Origin: Blastocladiella emersonii ATCC 22665 | Lineage: Eukaryota > Fungi > Blastocladiomycota | DNA: 64,000 bases | Reading direction: 5' to 3' | NCBI GenBank assembly: GCA_025594325.1 | Contig: JANHCV010000016.1 | Span: 434,001 to 498,000, forward strand | Shown: positions 44,717 to 54,474 of the stretch, in pieces | Layout: the number at the start of each line of letters is the position of its first letter | Numbering within the stretch: the stretch's first letter is position 1 | Position numbers and translations under genes: made by a program | The notes under the pieces: generated by a model | Seen by the model: only the letters and a program-made list of their open reading frames with translations | What the model was told of the DNA's origin: nothing | The model's database searches: none

Positions 44717-46900
44717 TTACTCCTCGGCGTACGACGGGTCGACGAGCGACGGGACCGGCAGCCCCGCGCGGTGCTGGAGAATCTTCTTCTGGATGTGGGG
44801 CCAGAAGTGCTTGACGCCGTACGCCTCGACGAGCTCGGGCCGCGTCCAGTCGTTGCCGTGGACGTGGCCGCGGCACGTCGCGGCGCCGCAGTTGCACTTG
44901 AACAGCGGGCGAGGCTCAGCGTCGGCCGTCGCATAGTCGAACGTCAGCTCGTCGCCCTTCTTGATGTCGCGGCGCGCGACCATCGTGTCGTAGCCCGTGT
45001 AGACCAGGTTCGGGTCGCAGTTGTGGTTGGTGAAGTAGCTCGGGTCCTCGTCGTACAGCGGCGGCGCGATCCACACGTCGTCCTCGGCCTGCTCGCCCAT
45101 GTGGTTGATGAAGGCCACGCGCCACGGCGCCATGGCCGCAATGTCGACTTCGTGCCGCAGGTACGTCTCGATCGGCCCGCGGAATAGCACCTCGCCCGCC
45201 GCAATGTCGGCCCCGGCAAACTGCCCGCGGCCCGCCGTCGGCGACGAACGCACCTCGACCTTGGGGCTCATGTAGTAGTCGTTGCCGTGGTACCACAGGT
45301 CGACGAGTGGCGCGCCCGCGGCACCCGCAGTCTCGTAGCTCGGACGCCCGCGCGGCACCGTAGTCCCGACCGTCCGCTTCGCCGTCAGCTCCTCGGCCAG
45401 GAACCCGAGCACCTCCTCGGGCGATGTCTCCTTGGCCGCGTACGACGAGTACTCGGCCGCCGCGTATCCGAGCTTCGGGTACGCGCGCAGCGTGAAGTGG
45501 CCGTCGCGCAGCGTCGCCGAGACCATGACGGCAGCCGCCGCCGGGTCGTCCTTGAACGCCGCCAGGTTCTCGTCCTCCTCGTCCTCGTCGTCGTACACGT
45601 CGAGCGCGACCACGGTCGCGTGCGAGAACTCGAGTCCACGGCGCACCGCAGCCACCAGGTCCGACGTGTCGTCGAGCAGCTCCTTGTCGCAGTCGAAGTA
45701 CTCGCGCAGCAGCGTCGCCCCGGGCACGGAGTCCGCGCGCATGCTGCCGGCGTGCTCGGACGGCGCGTACGACTTCTTGGCATCCGCATCAGCGGGCCGG
45801 TGCGCGTCGAGGACCGCGCGCACGCGCTTGCGCAGGGCGAGCGGGAGGTGGAACATGCCGAGGTGCGACTCGCCGTCGTAGTGGTCGAGGTCCTCGGACC
45901 CGTCGAACACGCGGCGCCGGATGTTGGCGTCGACGAGCGCCGGGCTCATGGCCGTCGGCGCGAGGTGCAGGTCCGACTGCGTCGCGTAGTAGAACTGGAA
46001 TGTCGAACCGACGCTCTCGACGCGCTGCGCGGCAACGTGAACGTGCGGGAACTGGCGCGCAAGGGCAGGGAGGAGGCCGAGACTCGTCGTGTCGCGCTCC
46101 GCGGCCGCGACCACGCCGCCGGGCGCCAGGAGCACGTCCGCGACGTGCGACAGGTGCGCGGCCGACGCCGCGACGTGGTCGACGAGCACCACGTCGTACT
46201 TGGCGTGCTGGCCCGACGACGCCCGCGACAGGAACGACTCGACGGTGACGTGCTTGACGCGGGCTTTGCGCAGAATGTCCGACACGTCGTCGTACTTGAA
46301 CTCGGCCGTCGTGTTGGCCGCAACCTCGATGTCGTAGTACGACTCGACGCGCGCCGTGTCACGAGCGGCGGCGCCCGACGCCGTCTCTTGGTCGAGGCCG
46401 GACACCCACACGATGTCGGTTAGCGTGAAGTGGCGAAGCGCCTCGGCGACCACCGACGCGCCGAGCGGGCCGAGGATGAGCACCTTGCGGGGCGTCGGGT
46501 CTAAGGCGCGCACCGTGTCAGTTCATGGAGGGCTTGCCGCTGCAGAGCCAAGTAACGTACGCCAGAGAAGCGCTGCATGCGTGAGCGACTCGGACCACAC
46601 GCGCTCGTCCGCGGGGCACAGCTGCGGCACGCCGCCGAGGACGAGGCAGTCGGCCGTCCGCGTCGGAGTGCGCGAGGCCGCCGCGGGTGCGGGCGCCGGA
46701 CTCGGGGCCAGGAACGACGCGGGCTGGATGGACTGCGGCGTGCCGTCGAGGTTGACGGTGATGGAGATGTAGCCGAGGCTCGCAAGCGTGGCGACCGACG
46801 CCAGGACCGCTAGGGCGGCAGTACCCGTCCACGACGACGCCGATGGCGCGACCTTGGAAGTCGAAGGCCGTGACGACGCGGCGCGAGACGTGGTTGACAT
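44717..46900 (-). CDS. Fusion A (707 aa): N-terminal TM anchor, degenerate spermidine-synthase-like domain, degenerate prokaryotic-type AdoMetDC domain, SET + post-SET methyltransferase
   Basis: Intron 46501-46560 gives ESLTHAALLW-HPTPRKVLILG. AdoMetDC-like segment EYFDCDKELLDD...LRDGHFTLRAYPKLGYAA...PRG. SET motifs GRGQFA, FTNHNCDPN, ELTFDY and CNCGAATCRG. Confidence 0.85.
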
Positions 46901-47334
46901 GATGTTGAGGGACTGCGCCAGCGCAGCGAAACAAGTTCCGAGTATTCTTGTGAGGGGAGCGGGGGCAGGCGCGGGGCACAGCCCGCTTTTGACGCTCGCC
47001 GAACGGCGCGGTCAAGCGAGTCATGATGCTGAACTGCGCCACGCGAAACCATGGCTAAGCCACCACCAGAGCCACCACGCGCCGCGAGCGTGATGAGCCG
47101 CGACAGGCCATCGCGCGACACGAGCGGGAGGCCGGGCGCACGGTCGAAGCACGCGCGCGGCCCTCTCACGAGTGGGCGTGCTGCCCGCGGCCGCCGCCTC
47201 GCTCTGCACGAGCGACCCGTACGACTCTGTGCCCTCGAGGACTCTGCGCCCGCCCGCCTGCTGCTCTTCGCGTGCTACCACCGACGCCGTCCCCAGCCAG
47301 CGCGACGGCGACCACTCGCACCACCGCCATCATC

Positions 47335-49417
47335 ATGTCCGCCGGCCCGCCCACCAACCTCGACACCGCACCGGCGGTGCCTGCGCCGCCCGACTCGGCC
47401 CAGGTCCCCGTCGACGACATGCACCGGCTTCCCGCTGCGGACTTTGGCCTATACGACTTCGCCGGCCACGACTCGGTCATCTTCCAGAACACGGGCCTGT
47501 TCGACGTCCAGCTCGCCTCGCTCGTCCGCCCCCTCGAGGACACCACGTACCTGCACCTACTGGAGCGCATGTTCGAGCCCAACGCAGGCTACTCGCACGA
47601 GACGGACGAGCGCGTCGCGACGCCCGAGGCGCTGCTCGCGCGCGCCTCCGAGTCGTTCGATCTCGCCGCAGACGAGCAGCGCCGCGCGCGTCCTGGCTAC
47701 CTGTCGCGCCTCACCTCGTTCGCCCTGCTCGCGTGCAAGAAGCGAGTCTACGACGCAGCCCGCCCGCTGTGGCTCTCGGTCATGGGCCCCGAGGCCCCTC
47801 TCTGTACGCTCGCTCGTCCTTGCCGCCGCGCCGTGGCGCACCGCCCCCGTCACCTCCGCGGCCAGCACGCTGACCCGTCCCCGCACGTGCCCAAACAATC
47901 ATGTAGTCGCCAGCAAGGACTCGCGCCCTGTGCCGATCCAGAACGGCGCTCCTGTCGCCGCCGCCGCCGCCGCCACCGCGGCCGAGGCGCGGACCGAGGC
48001 CGTGTGGACCTTCAGCAACACGCACATGCACGCCTGCTTCGCGGCCACGAACGCGCAGCTCGACCGCATCATCGCCACCCTCCCGCCCGTCACCGACTTG
48101 CGCGCCACGGTCACGCTCGCCACCCGCGCCCCGCCCGGCCCTACTGCGCGGTACGCGTACTTCAGCCCGCGCCAGCCGCACCACACGTCGATGGCGCGGG
48201 CCATGCCCGGCGCAGCCACCGGCAACGTCACCATGCCCGTCGTCGTGGGCGACGTCGTCCCCGTCAACGGCGTGTACTACTGGTCGTACCTCGTCGTGCC
48301 CCATGGCGTGGTCCCTGGCCAGCACCTCGCCGACGTTCTCGCCAGCACTGGCGTCGCCGCCGCCGCCCGCGTCGACATCCACAACACCGGTATCCCCGCG
48401 CAGGCCCGCCTCGTCCTACTCGAGGATCGCCCCGACCTCAACCTAGCCTCGTGGACGCCGCCCAACTTGGCGGCCCCGGTGACCGTCGTCGCCGAATCCG
48501 AGCGGTCGTACGTGGGCTACGGGCTCGACGCCGAGATCGAGGGCCTGCGTCGGTGCGTGTCGTCGTCTTGAGTAACCGCGTCTGCCGCCCACTGACCTTT
48601 CCGCTCCCGCACCACCTCCAGGCTCGCGTGGCCCGTGGCCGTCCTGCTCAAGTACAACCCGATCGCCGAGAACACGGACGTGACCATCGAGCCCCGCGAC
48701 AAGCTCGCCGCCGCCGCAGGAGATGAGGAGGAGGAGCAGAAGACTGGGACCGCGGGCGGCGACAAAATGGATGTCGACCCGACCGCGCCGCGGCAGCGCA
48801 CCAGCATCGAAAAGGAGACCGGCGCGGCCGAGATCGACGCCAAGGACGCGGCGTACCTTCTTCGGCTCGGCACCCGCACCGCGGCGGACTACCTCGTCTC
48901 GTCGCGGCGCGGCAAGGCCAAGGCCAAGGACCGCGGCACCAGTTCGTCGGCACCGTCGTCGACGGCGGCCTCGGGCCGCGCACCACCCGCCGCATCGGCG
49001 TCCAACCCGCAAGCACGCGCCGCCGCCGGTCGTAACCCGAGCGGCAAGCGGGACCAGTTCTACAAGCGCCGGCAAGCGCTCGTCAAGGAGTCCGTGACGT
49101 GCGCCGAGGAGATCGCCAAGGGCAACCGCCCCCGCACCACGCCGCGCATCGAGAACCACCTGCTGCTCAACGAGATGCGCGACAATGGCGACCCGTCCTA
49201 CGCGCTCGTGTACAAGTCCAACAACAAGTACTACCTGTACGCCGCGCCCGGGCGCCCGCGTGGGGCCATGGACCAGTGGGTCCGCAAGACGGTGCGCACG
49301 CAGACCGCGTACGAGCTCGAGCTCAAGCACAACAACTTTCCGACCTTCGAGGTGCTGACCAAGGCGCTCAAGGGCGCGCCGTTCCTCGACATGGAGCTCA
49401 TCTTCGGCCTGTGCTGA
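47335..49417 (+). CDS. Hypothetical 636-aa protein, 3 exons, with C-terminal MADS-box-like segment
   Basis: Introns 47804-47906 and 48553-48621 join three ORF pieces in frame (1911 nt). NPSGKRDQFYKRRQALVK and YALVYKSNNKYYLYA resemble the MADS helix and beta-hairpin. Confidence 0.6.
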
Positions 49418-50562: not shown

Positions 50563-50572
50563 GTATATAACC
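50563..50572 (+). promoter_or_regulatory. TATA-like box upstream of fusion B
   Basis: AGTATATAAC about 120 bp before ATG 50690, in otherwise GC-rich DNA. A similar GTATATAACC lies about 200 bp upstream of SPT2. Confidence 0.45.
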
Positions 50573-50689: not shown

Positions 50690-52399
50690 ATGGCCAACAT
50701 CGTGACTCTCGACAAACTGCTCAAGTCGCCGCCCGCGTCGGCGCCGGCACCGTCACCAGCGCCGCGCATGGAGCGCCGAAAGTCGGTGGTCTCGTCAACG
50801 TCAGTCGTGAGCTACTGGGGCGAGCAGCGCACCATCCTGATGCTGTGCGGGCTCCTGCTGTGCTCGGTGCTCGTCAACGTCTTCTTCTCGTCGACCATCC
50901 AGCCCGCCACCTTCGCGCTCAACAACGCCTGGAGCAAGCGCCCGAACCTCGTGTGCGACATGGACGCTATCAGCAAGTCGCACCTGCCGACGGGCAAGCA
51001 GTACGTTTCTCTCGCAGGAAGTGATGGCCGCAATGATCATGGACTCACCTCGCGCACTCGCACGTCTCACAGCCACATGGTCGACCTGTACGGCGTGCCC
51101 GTCGAGAACGTGCGGTTCCTCGAGGAGTCCAAGATGCTGACCGAGGTGGCGTCGTACATTGCCAAGGCCGGGCTCACGCTGCTCGACTACTCGGCCTACC
51201 ACTTCGACTGCGGAGGCATCACGGCCGTGTTCCTGCTGTCCGAGTCGCACGTGTCGTTCCACTCGTGGCCCGAGCATGGGTTCGTCGCCCTCGACGTTTA
51301 CACGTGCGGCAAGGGCCGCCCCGAGCACATTGTCGACAAGTTCAAGGCGCTGCTGCAGCCGGCGGCCGTCCGCCACACGTTCCTCGAGCGCGGCGCCGAC
51401 CGCCACCTCGCCATGACCACTAACTCGGGCAACTTTGGCGGCATCGCCGCGAACGAGACCGAGTCGGCGGCGCCCATCGTGCGCCCGGTTGTCGCGTCCC
51501 CGCCGGCCAGCGCCGCCGAGGCCGCTCCCGTTCCCAGCAAGGCCGACGAGGTGGTGCAGCTCGCTCCCGGCCGCGTGTTCCCCGACGTGGCGCCGGTGGC
51601 GGCGACCGAGATCATGACCAAGAAGCTGATGGGCCCGTCGGCGCCCATGGACCTGTGCGTCAACGGCGACGGGCCCGAGGACGACTGCCTCCTGCTGCGC
51701 AACGCGGTGGTGCACGCGGACGTGCAGACGCCGTACCAGCGCATCGAGATTGTCGATACGCAGACGCTGGGCCGGTGCATGCTGCTGGACCGCGTGGTGC
51801 AGTTCTGCGAGGAGGACAACCACATCTACACGTCGCAGATCACGGACCGCGCCATGGCGACGCTCCCCGCGGACGACGGCCGCAAGCTCAACGTGACGAT
51901 CATCGGCGGCGGCGACGGGTGGGTGGCGTCGTACCTGCTGGACGCGTACGCGGACCGCATTGAGTCGATCCGGATCGTCGACATTGACGAGCAGGTGGCC
52001 AAGCTGACGCGCACCTTCTTCGACCCCGAGGGCGCAGCGTGGTCGTTCACGGACCCGCGCGTGCACTGGACATTCGTCGACGCCAACGTGTGGCTGGCCG
52101 ACCTGCCCGCGGGCGTCGCGCCCGGGTCCATGGACCTCGTCATCATCGACTGCACCGACCACACGGCCGAAGCCTCGAAGGTCCTGTACACGCGCGACTT
52201 TTACGCGAACGTGCGGCGGCTGATGCGCGCCGGCGCGGCGCTCACGCAGCAGGTCAACACGGTCGACCCCGACTACGCGCCCTTCTTCGACACGGTGCGC
52301 GCGCAGTGGGCCGACGCCGGGCTCAACGGGCTCTCCGAGTGGACCGCGTACATGCAGTCGTTCTCGGGCATGTCGCTCTTCTGGCTGGCGCACGCGTAA
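50690..52399 (+). CDS. Fusion B (545 aa): N-terminal TM anchor, prokaryotic class 1B S-adenosylmethionine decarboxylase, aminopropyltransferase (spermidine synthase family)
   Basis: Intron 51001-51072 gives GKHHMVDLYG. AdoMetDC motifs LLSESHVSFHSWPEHGFVALDVYTCG. Aminopropyltransferase motifs TPYQRIEI, MLLD, IIGGGDG, VDID and DLVIIDCTD. TM segment ILMLCGLLLCSVLVNVFF. Confidence 0.92.
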   Translation: MANIVTLDKLLKSPPASAPAPSPAPRMERRKSVVSSTSVVSYWGEQRTILMLCGLLLCSVLVNVFFSSTIQPATFALNNAWSKRPNLVCDMDAISKSHLPTGKQYVSLAGSDGRNDHGLTSRTRTSHSHMVDLYGVPVENVRFLEESKMLTEVASYIAKAGLTLLDYSAYHFDCGGITAVFLLSESHVSFHSWPEHGFVALDVYTCGKGRPEHIVDKFKALLQPAAVRHTFLERGADRHLAMTTNSGNFGGIAANETESAAPIVRPVVASPPASAAEAAPVPSKADEVVQLAPGRVFPDVAPVAATEIMTKKLMGPSAPMDLCVNGDGPEDDCLLLRNAVVHADVQTPYQRIEIVDTQTLGRCMLLDRVVQFCEEDNHIYTSQITDRAMATLPADDGRKLNVTIIGGGDGWVASYLLDAYADRIESIRIVDIDEQVAKLTRTFFDPEGAAWSFTDPRVHWTFVDANVWLADLPAGVAPGSMDLVIIDCTDHTAEASKVLYTRDFYANVRRLMRAGAALTQQVNTVDPDYAPFFDTVRAQWADAGLNGLSEWTAYMQSFSGMSLFWLAHA

Positions 52400-52917: not shown

Positions 52918-54474
52918 ATGATGATGTTGCGCACTGCACTCGCTGCCCGCGCGGGCCACCACGCCGCGCGGCGGTCCGTGATCCGCGGATTCGCGGCCTC
53001 GGCCACTCGCGCCGATGCTGCGACGAAGGACGCTGCTGCTCCGGCCGCCGAGTCCGCCGCCGAGACCAAGAACCCGTACAAGCTCGGCAAGCCGTTTGCG
53101 GCAGCGCTCGAGGCCGACACGGCGGGCGTGCCCGTCAAGGAGGGCCTGCCGACAGCCAACGGCAACGGCAACGGCAACGGCGCGCGCCGGTACTCTGTGC
53201 TGCCGCACCGGACCAACCTCACGTCGCGGCTGTGGCTCGACCGCTTCGACCGCAACAACAGCGAGTACAAGCGCCTGATCGAGGACCGCATCGCCGCGGC
53301 CGAGGGCGGGCACGGCGCCGCCATCAACCCGCTCGCCGTCGACCCCGCCACCCTCGCCAAGCCGCGCAAGCTCGTCCTCAAGACCATGAAGGACTCGTAC
53401 GTCGAGGAGCTGCTCCCCTTCCAGACCAACCCGCACGTCCGCGAGGAGTACGTCAGCTTCTACGGCGGCATCCGCATCGCCAAGCTGCTCGAGGACCTCG
53501 ACGCCATGTCCGGCAGCATCTCGTACACGCACTGCGACGACAACACCCCCGAGACCCCGCCCCTAACCATCGTCACCGCCTCCATCGACCGCATCGACCT
53601 GCTCAAGCGGCCCTCGCTCAACCAGGACATCAAGGTCGCCGGCTTCGTCTCGTTTGTCGGCCACTCGTCCATGGAGATCACCATCAACGTGGAATCCGTC
53701 GACTCCAAGGGCAACCTCGAGGACCCGATCCTGCGCGCCAAGTTCACCATGGTCGCCCGCGACCCCATCACCAACAAGGCCGTCCAGGTCAACCCGCTCG
53801 TCCTGCAGAACGACGCCGAGCGCCGCCTCTTCGCCATGGGCGCCGAGCTCAAGGCGCGCAAGAAGCTCGCCGCCGCGCAGTCGCTCAGCAAGCTGCCGCC
53901 CACCTCGGACGAGCGCCTGCTCATCCACGAGCTGTGGCTGCAGTCCAAAAAGTACGGCGAGCACAAGCTGCCGCCCGGCTTCACCTGGATGTCCGACACC
54001 AAGTGCCAGTCGGTCCACATCACCCAGCCGCAGGACCGCAACATCCACAACTTCATTTTCGGCGGCCACCTTCTGCGCCAGGCCTTCGAGATGGCCTACA
54101 CGACCGCCTCGCTCTTCTGCCGCGGCCACCCGATCTTCCTCGCCATGGACGACATCTGGTTCCGCAAGCCCGTGCCCATCGGCTCGATCCTCCACTTCAA
54201 CTCGCACATTGTCTACTCGCGCGCCCCCGCCGGCGGCAGCTTCCAGGTCATGGTCACGGCCGACGTCGTCGACCACGCCACGGGCGCCCGCGACACTACC
54301 AACGTGTTCCACTTCACCTTTGGTCTCGACGAGTCCACCACCAAGTCGCCGCTGCCCCAGGTCCTCCCGCGCACCTACGAGGACTCGATGAACTACCTCG
54401 ACGGCAAGCGCCGCCTCGAGACCGGCCTCGAGATGGCCAAGGAGAACAAGTCGTCGCTCCTCTCACTGTGGTGA
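52918..54474 (+). CDS. Mitochondrial acyl-CoA thioesterase (ACOT9-like, double hotdog fold)
   Basis: Arg-rich presequence. Motifs GGIRIAKLLEDLD, IVTASIDRI, FVGHSSMEI, PQDRNIHNFIFGGHLLRQAFE and FRKPVPIGSIL. Confidence 0.88.
   Translation: MMMLRTALAARAGHHAARRSVIRGFAASATRADAATKDAAAPAAESAAETKNPYKLGKPFAAALEADTAGVPVKEGLPTANGNGNGNGARRYSVLPHRTNLTSRLWLDRFDRNNSEYKRLIEDRIAAAEGGHGAAINPLAVDPATLAKPRKLVLKTMKDSYVEELLPFQTNPHVREEYVSFYGGIRIAKLLEDLDAMSGSISYTHCDDNTPETPPLTIVTASIDRIDLLKRPSLNQDIKVAGFVSFVGHSSMEITINVESVDSKGNLEDPILRAKFTMVARDPITNKAVQVNPLVLQNDAERRLFAMGAELKARKKLAAAQSLSKLPPTSDERLLIHELWLQSKKYGEHKLPPGFTWMSDTKCQSVHITQPQDRNIHNFIFGGHLLRQAFEMAYTTASLFCRGHPIFLAMDDIWFRKPVPIGSILHFNSHIVYSRAPAGGSFQVMVTADVVDHATGARDTTNVFHFTFGLDESTTKSPLPQVLPRTYEDSMNYLDGKRRLETGLEMAKENKSSLLSLW

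Follow-up and report, generated by a model that had tools for sequence, protein, structure and literature searches.

Does a zoosporic fungus carry out polyamine chemistry in its secretory pathway? The question is raised by a gene of the water mold Blastocladiella emersonii ATCC 22665, H9P43_010027, which lies in the 64,000-nucleotide stretch of DNA analyzed here (the window; assembly GCA_025594325.1, contig JANHCV010000016.1, positions 434,001 to 498,000, G+C content about 68%) and to whose numbering all positions below refer. The gene encodes a transmembrane (TM) segment followed by a class 1b S-adenosylmethionine (SAM) decarboxylase (AdoMetDC) fused to an aminopropyltransferase (APT). We found that the anchor is conserved in relatives from several phyla, that the APT carries its own family-wide signatures at otherwise canonical motifs, and that in four other zoosporic species, from two phyla, a gene for a SET-domain protein lies directly upstream on the opposite strand. 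We propose that the product is a lumenal, self-sufficient aminopropylating module that works with the SET methyltransferase partner and acts on an acceptor other than, or beyond, putrescine, a reading that we judge to stand about evenly between right and wrong.

Gene structure and catalytic domains

The best database match of the open reading frame (ORF) at 50690-52399 (+) is the deposited "hypothetical protein H9P43_010027" of the same strain (P0001, 545 amino acids). The frame is open from 50690 to the stop codon at 52397-52399, and the 24 codons that are absent from P0001 are exactly those at 51001-51072, which gives a gene of two exons with the following features.

50564-50570, plus strand: TATATAA, a putative TATA-like box recognized by inspection of the sequence, about 120 nt 5' of the start codon
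50690-51000, plus strand: exon 1, encoding a basic Pro/Ser/Ala-rich tail, the TM helix and a stem with the conserved Cys89, in agreement with the N terminus of P0001
50831-50893, plus strand: single TM helix or signal anchor, residues 48 to 68, from hydropathy, AlphaFold2 and equivalents in relatives
51001-51072, plus strand: spliceosomal intron of 72 nt, GTACGT...CAG, in frame and stop-free
51073-52399, plus strand: exon 2, encoding the AdoMetDC, the linker and the APT, stop codon included
51077-51394, plus strand: class 1b AdoMetDC domain, from Pfam PF02675, TIGR03330, alignments with PDB 2iii and 1tlu, and a high predicted local distance difference test (pLDDT) score over residues 100 to 223
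51239-51250, plus strand: SESH, with the processing site between Glu and Ser
51299-51310, plus strand: YTCG, with the catalytic Cys
51431-51646, plus strand: low-complexity Ala/Pro/Ser linker, pLDDT below 50 over residues 237 to 290, variable in length and sequence in the family alignment (A1)
51656-51688, plus strand: CVNGDx5DC, the first conserved Cys pair (C299 and C309), from sequence and family alignment
51719-52396, plus strand: APT, an N-terminal beta-hairpin domain plus a Rossmann domain, from Pfam PF17284 and PF01564, PDB 7xif (E 1e-22) and Foldseek
within 51719-52396, plus strand: the GRC/QFC cysteines C339 and C349, from sequence and family alignment
51815-51838, plus strand: DNHIYTSQ, replacing D-E-x-x-Y-H-E
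51905-51919, plus strand: GGGDG, extended to GGGDGW at 51905-51922
51980-51988, plus strand: DID, part of VDID
52148-52159, plus strand: DCTD, part of DCTDH

The ATG at 50690, flanked by A at position -3 and G at position +4, is the first one 3' of the TATATAA. The intron is supported by comparison, since the spliced junction (...HLPTGKHHMVDLYG) is identical in the Catenaria and Blastocladiella britannica orthologues. A preliminary description of this locus, made from the sequence, had given this gene, intron and domain layout, and the deposited protein, the orthologue junctions and the Pfam matches show them to be real; the positions that it listed for SESH, YTCG, DNHIYTSQ, GGGDG, DID and DCTD were all exact when located in the sequence.

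The decarboxylase domain matches PF02675 (AdoMet_dc) with an E value of 9e-23 and 81.1 bits, against a gathering cutoff of 25, and it scores 82.4 bits against a cutoff of 75.65 with TIGR03330, the NCBIfam model for Bacillus-type class 1b AdoMetDC. Enzymes of this class have a Glu-Ser self-cleavage site, with a His at +5 and a Cys at +20 from the Ser (Ser63, His68 and Cys83 in Thermotoga maritima). When aligned with the Thermotoga and Aquifex enzymes, the B. emersonii segment LLSESHVSFHSWPEHGFVALDVYTCG supplies Ser162, His167 (in FHSWPE) and Cys182 (in YTCG), with Glu161-Ser162 as the cleavage site, and E161, S162, H163, H167 and C182 are all invariant in the AdoMetDC family alignment (A2). By this assignment the class 1b catalytic residues are intact, as the preliminary description had held.

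In the APT region, PF01564 (Spermine_synth) is matched with an E value of 1e-15 (57.8 bits versus a gathering cutoff of 22.9) and PF17284 (Spermine_synt_N) with an E value of 5e-6 (26.7 bits versus 22.1), and Foldseek comparison with spermidine synthase structures gives template modeling scores, by target, of about 0.72 to 0.75, so that the domain has the spermidine synthase fold. The Asp residues that bind decarboxylated SAM (dcAdoMet) or act in catalysis, D385, D407, D409, D463 and D466, are invariant across the family in alignment A1, as are Gln347, N353, Tyr356 and W387, and T357 is nearly so. D-N-x-x-Y-T stands where canonical APTs read D-E-x-x-Y-H-E (DEQYYHE in Pyrobaculum), an invariant Trp directly follows GGGDG, and the DxxD box reads DCTDH in most members. 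The signatures of the clade are therefore DN..YT, GGGDGW and DCTDH, together with four invariant cysteines. The retention of the dcAdoMet and catalytic Asp residues and the alteration of the DE..YHE segment had both been pointed out from the B. emersonii sequence; both are confirmed here, and the DN..YT segment proves to be a property of the whole family rather than a one-off.

We also compared the APT with named synthase classes. It does not qualify as a spermidine synthase in the strict sense, with 123.6 bits versus a cutoff of 260 for NCBIfam PRK00811, 90.4 bits versus 249.55 for TIGR00417, and no D-E-x-x-Y-H-E segment. Li et al. (2024; PMC11107197) give motif rules under which spermine synthases carry hhhhGGGD(G/C)G with a Glu in motif 3, and thermospermine synthases carry hhhhGGGEGA. 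The B. emersonii protein reads IIGGGDGW, which fits neither pattern, so the label "thermospermine synthase" that UniRef gives to the Catenaria orthologue is not supported; the Medicago thermospermine synthase (6bq2) also scores no higher than spermidine synthases do. Spermine synthase of the bacterial or animal type was rejected as well, given the Trp at +2, the Asp rather than Glu in motif 3, the intact AdoMetDC and a score of 37.9 bits for 3c6k with the family profile.

The chief alternative to a remodeled enzyme is an ordinary small-polyamine synthase, making spermidine, thermospermine, spermine or norspermidine, that is simply tethered to a membrane, on its cytosolic or lumenal side, and has an unrelated SET gene as its neighbor. 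Bacterial and Pelagibacter fusions with the same domain order make spermidine and spermine or thermospermine (PMC12803844, PMC11107197), the UniRef label would agree with such a role, motif 3 has the Asp (VDID) that thermospermine synthases have under the rules above, and every dcAdoMet-binding and catalytic Asp is retained. However, GGGDGW matches neither the spermine nor the thermospermine synthase motif, the score lies far below the NCBIfam spermidine synthase equivalog cutoff, and an ordinary synthase does not account for the conservation of an anchor or signal peptide, for cysteines that never vary or for a SET gene kept head-to-head in the four other zoosporic species. We regard this alternative as rather unlikely; if a standard polyamine is nevertheless the sole product, the protein would be an unusual membrane-tethered paralogue of modest interest. 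For the remodeled enzyme that we favor, a changed acceptor is a reasonable inference from the motifs, and an acceptor other than putrescine is plausible.

Membrane anchor and SET-domain partner

A single segment of the protein stands out in hydropathy, with a Kyte-Doolittle value of 2.47 for the 19-mer at residues 48 to 66 and of 1.23 for the runner-up window, and the 47-residue tail on its N-terminal side has a net charge of +4 (+5 with the amino terminus). AlphaFold2, run with the family alignment, gives a model of mean pLDDT 76 with a helix at residues 41 to 69, a confident AdoMetDC at 100 to 223, a disordered linker at 237 to 290 and a confident APT at 296 to 545. A hydrophobic segment precedes the AdoMetDC domain in 19 of 20 near-full-length relatives from several phyla, and its N-terminal side is always net positive; the sole exception, Lobulomyces P0011, resembles a truncated gene model. 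In four relatives (P0014 and P0020 to P0022) the segment lies at the extreme N terminus and resembles a cleavable signal peptide, in which case everything downstream would be lumenal. C299, C339, C349 and C464 are invariant across the family, C309 is present in at least 90% of the sequences and the stem residue C89 is common; C339 and C349 are absent, by eye, from the canonical APTs aligned in the PDB search. The conservation of the anchor, the signal-peptide-like relatives and the invariant cysteines favor a type II topology with the catalytic side out, and the lumenal or exterior orientation suggested in the preliminary description thereby gains comparative support.

If the TM-coding exon were not part of the functional mRNA, translation could instead begin at Met91 or Met106 and yield a soluble AdoMetDC-APT in the cytosol. 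In-frame Met codons do follow the helix, three relatives (P0004, P0011 and P0012) are N-terminally truncated gene models, and no RNA run is listed. Against this, Catenaria and B. britannica conserve the tail, TM segment and stem as protein, with a near-identical stem in Catenaria (NAWSKRP.L.CDMDAIS..HLPTGKHH), and the chytrids have an equivalent hydrophobic segment. The ATG at 50690 is also the first one past the putative TATA-like box and has a good context, and the partner protein has the same kind of anchor. A soluble form is therefore very improbable, and we return to the anchored protein.

The partner gene in the B. emersonii window is the following.

44717-46900, minus strand: "fusion A," encoding a TM segment, a methyltransferase-fold region, an AdoMet_dc-like domain and a SET domain, from Pfam and synteny

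Its first exon encodes the hydrophobic segment, and its main ORF matches Pfam AdoMet_dc (2.4e-8) and SET (1.8e-10). The SET domain looks intact, and the AdoMet_dc-like domain lacks, by eye, both the Ser of the Glu-Ser site and the Cys of YTCG. In Spizellomyces punctatus, Catenaria anguillulae, Fimicolochytrium jonesii and Cladochytrium replicatum (L001, L002, L011 and L012), the SET gene lies directly upstream of the fusion on the opposite strand, in a head-to-head arrangement. The Spizellomyces partner (L001, 6996-9053, minus strand) has an N-terminal TM segment, a Pfam Spermine_synth domain in which GGGDG has decayed to GNEEG, and a SET domain. Degenerate APT or AdoMetDC domains are thus found in the two partners examined, those of Spizellomyces and B. 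emersonii; a profile comparison of the N-terminal domain of the B. emersonii partner with the APT was not significant (probability 3.7%). Two cysteines that never vary in the active fusion (GRC...QFCE.DN) are still present in the dead APT of the Spizellomyces partner (GRC...SC.DDE), a hint that a duplicate within one and the same APT lineage gave rise to the partner. Because the head-to-head linkage has been kept across two phyla, we argue that the two genes share a function.

On the other side of the fusion gene, the window contains a downstream gene (52921-54471, plus strand) with a 4HBT (hotdog) thioesterase domain (Pfam E 4e-6), which has no evident tie to the polyamine genes.

Distribution, descent and a proposed secretory module

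An exhaustive profile search recovered 243 proteins at E ≤ 1e-30, of which about a dozen cluster representatives make up the family proper; beyond them, the matches form a broad continuum of other AdoMetDC-APT fusions. A word search with the AdoMetDC region returned just eight close fungal orthologues and was uninformative about origin. Family members come from Blastocladiomycota (B. emersonii, B. britannica, Catenaria, Sorochytrium and Paraphysoderma) and from Chytridiomycota (two Spizellomyces, Fimicolochytrium, Cladochytrium, Lobulomyces and one metagenome-assembled genome of Lobulomycetales). The rust Cronartium quercuum has a TM-anchored member (P0085; L013, 8001-9654) whose catalytic motifs are degenerate, with no Glu-Ser and with GGADGW and IIDSLAY, and no SET gene is called near it; in Dikarya, this copy may be what is left of the system, as a pseudoenzyme. 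The rust sequence has as its sister group an environmental clade (P0015, P0017 to P0022 and P0055 to P0066) with intact catalytic motifs, signal-peptide-like N termini and an N-A-S sequon after the CxxxC box. Two contigs of this clade (L003 and L004) have sparse ORF calls without family matches, and from this sparseness their hosts are probably intron-rich eukaryotes.

In the IQ-TREE analysis, support by the Shimodaira-Hasegawa-like approximate likelihood ratio test (SH-aLRT) is 98 for Blastocladiomycota, 90 for Chytridiomycota, 94 for Cronartium plus the environmental clade, and 93 for all three together, a pattern that would be expected from vertical descent within Fungi with later losses. 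The next branches outside the fungal clade are a GC-rich pair and an AT-rich group, two members of which lie on giant-virus-like contigs. One AT-rich fusion (L014, 8001-9044) is on a 721-kb contig with capsid-domain and ankyrin genes, and the other (L015, 5989-8079) is on a contig with ankyrin, Ras and GT4 glycosyltransferase genes. The latter fusion, P0178 (696 amino acids), has an additional C-terminal FAD amine-oxidase domain, which places polyamine synthesis and oxidation in one chain. Dinoflagellates (Biecheleria, Symbiodinium, Yihiella and one further transcriptome; P0116, P0151, P0158 and P0173) have multidomain proteins of 870 to 980 amino acids with AdoMetDC-APT units, and these form a well-supported clade of their own outside the fungal one.

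These data bear on a proposal, made from the B. emersonii sequence, that the gene was acquired horizontally from a prokaryote long ago. In its strongest form, a bacterial speH-speE fusion would have been transferred recently or directly and have gained its eukaryotic leader later. The AdoMetDC belongs to class 1b, which is prokaryotic in type, and its best stand-alone matches are bacterial enzymes or those of Aquifex and Thermotoga. However, when 185,579 prokaryotic species, each represented by a single genome, were scanned with two family patterns, which distant fused relatives could escape, all matches were stand-alone AdoMetDC genes of 27 to 39% identity; the scan recovered no fused or GGGDGW-type relative and no prokaryote bearing the family signatures. 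We rejected a direct bacterial origin on this result. In addition, the tree follows fungal phylogeny, and the fusions that branch closest to the fungal clade come from contigs of giant-virus-like or protist character. Such a recent or direct transfer is improbable, and since the tree follows fungal phylogeny, any transfer would predate the split of Blastocladiomycota, Chytridiomycota and rusts. The "old" part of the proposal stands with the occurrence of the family in these three groups, and the data support an enzyme class that is prokaryotic in type and was anciently acquired; a prokaryotic donor was not found, as the nearest relatives in the tree are eukaryotic or giant-virus-like fusions.

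Combining this evidence, we infer the following mechanism for the anchored fusion. The protein would span the membrane once, in type II (N-in) orientation, and hold its AdoMetDC and APT in the secretory lumen or at the cell exterior. After self-cleavage at Glu161/Ser162, the small beta chain would carry the TM anchor, and the alpha chain would consist of the rest of the decarboxylase together with the APT. The fused pyruvoyl AdoMetDC would make dcAdoMet locally from imported SAM; we propose this because the lumenal compartment has no other known source of dcAdoMet, and local synthesis would explain why both activities are fused. The remodeled APT pocket (DN..YT, GGGDGW and DCTDH) could then add aminopropyl units to a growing polyamine chain or to lysine side chains of secretory proteins, and the divergently transcribed, TM-anchored SET partner, with its dead APT and AdoMetDC domains, may N-methylate the product or hand it on. 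The gene pair would be the fungal counterpart of the diatom AdoMetDC-APT and SET fusions that have been proposed to build long-chain polyamines (LCPA). The wider claim, that the secretory pathway of zoosporic fungi uses a two-gene module of diatom silaffin/LCPA design to make N-methylated polyamines (oligo- or long-chain) or lysines modified with polyamines, is one that we put forward tentatively and hold to be possible, on balance somewhat doubtful.

Several observations weigh against this mechanism. The topology is deduced from the positive-inside rule and from the relatives, and in B. emersonii the two flanks do not differ in charge when counted up to 15 residues from the helix. The cysteine argument concerns conservation of residues. 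Splicing and the 5' exon rest on sequence comparison, the list of RNA runs being empty. In B. emersonii, a gene at about 47051-49417 separates the partner from the fusion, and in the tree the diatom-like TM fusions P0025 and P0026 fall outside the fungal clade. We know of no SAM transporter of the fungal secretory pathway, and long-chain or N-methylated polyamines are not reported from zoosporic fungi in the literature searched.

If the mechanism is correct, fungal polyamine chemistry would not be limited to cytosolic putrescine, spermidine and spermine, and early-diverging fungi would have a secretory aminopropylation and methylation system of a kind so far discussed only for silica-forming algae. 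It would imply a route for SAM import in fungi, the transport question then being how SAM enters the secretory lumen, and it would mean that the fungal wall, cyst coat or secretome contains a polycationic component so far unrecognized. The gene pair would be an old and mostly lost one in fungi, with nearest relatives that include giant-virus-like sequences. It would also offer, in organisms such as the transformable Spizellomyces punctatus, a simpler, two-gene model for the diatom LCPA enzymes, which to our knowledge are still uncharacterized biochemically.

Comparison with known systems

The best PDB match of the APT in a single-sequence search is Pyrobaculum calidifontis SpeE (PDB 7XIF; 28% identity, E 1e-22), and with the family profile the Plasmodium spermidine synthase chains outscore it. 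The Pyrobaculum enzyme is substrate-flexible and uses several amine acceptors (PMC11107197), and we count this match in favor of the proposed mechanism. It differs from the fungal protein in being stand-alone and soluble and in having the canonical DEQYYHE and GGGEG.

Over both domains, the top Foldseek match is human spermine synthase (SMS; PDB 3C6K), with 461 aligned columns and the same order of an AdoMetDC-like N-terminal domain followed by an APT. SMS comes first because it is the sole solved protein with these two domains. It is a soluble, cytosolic protein with a dead AdoMetDC domain, in contrast to the fungal protein, which is anchored and has an intact AdoMetDC. We rejected kinship with animal spermine synthase, as 3c6k is absent at E ≤ 1e-3 in the single-sequence search and its score with the family profile, given above, compares with 67 to 113 bits for spermidine synthases. 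Animal spermine synthase itself descends from a bacterial-type fusion (PMC12803844).

The bacterial fusions share more with the fungal protein. AdoMetDC-APT fusion proteins of bacteria are said to have been described by Green and colleagues in 2011. Such fusions, including those from Pelagibacter, delta-proteobacteria and Krumholzibacteria, have been tested (PMC11107197, PMC12803844). They have the same domain order and combine an active class 1b AdoMetDC with an active APT in a module that is self-sufficient from SAM to aminopropyl transfer. In contrast, the bacterial-type fusion P0023 lacks a hydrophobic segment at its N terminus and its site is of the canonical DEFFYHE/GGGDGG form, and in the tree the bacterial fusions and the fungal clade lie on opposite sides.

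The closest parallel in design is with diatoms. The 2011 abstract by Michael reportedly mentions versions in which an AdoMetDC and an APT are dead. According to papers that cite that work, diatoms have fusions of an AdoMetDC with an APT, both of bacterial derivation, some of them with a histone N-methyltransferase domain (PMC3820600, PMC6356823, PMC12803844), and these fusions were proposed to make and N-methylate LCPA (PMC3820600, PMC6356823). Chytrids and Blastocladiella are linked to such fusions or to LCPA neither in the 2025 survey of spermine and thermospermine synthases in eukaryotes (PMC12803844) nor in the other literature searched, and an anchored AdoMetDC-APT and SET gene pair of diatom LCPA design is not described in fungi in the literature searched.

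The fungal and diatom sets differ in several respects. The host is a zoosporic fungus without known silica or LCPA, the fungal anchor is uncleaved and the diatom signal peptide is cleaved, and DN..YT, GGGDGW, DCTDH and the four cysteines are the fungal family's own. The partner also differs, with the order TM-APT-AdoMetDC-SET in the fungi, compared with the diatom protein P0077 from Seminavis, which has a signal-peptide-like N terminus and SET and APT-like domains and begins with the SET domain. What the two sets have in common, as far as the citing papers portray the diatom one, is a class 1b AdoMetDC upstream of an APT, an N terminus for secretory targeting and a second protein that joins APT- or AdoMetDC-type domains to a SET domain. 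An anchored or signal-bearing AdoMetDC-APT together with an APT/AdoMetDC-type SET partner, the design of the diatom LCPA "machine," is thus what we find in the zoosporic fungi.

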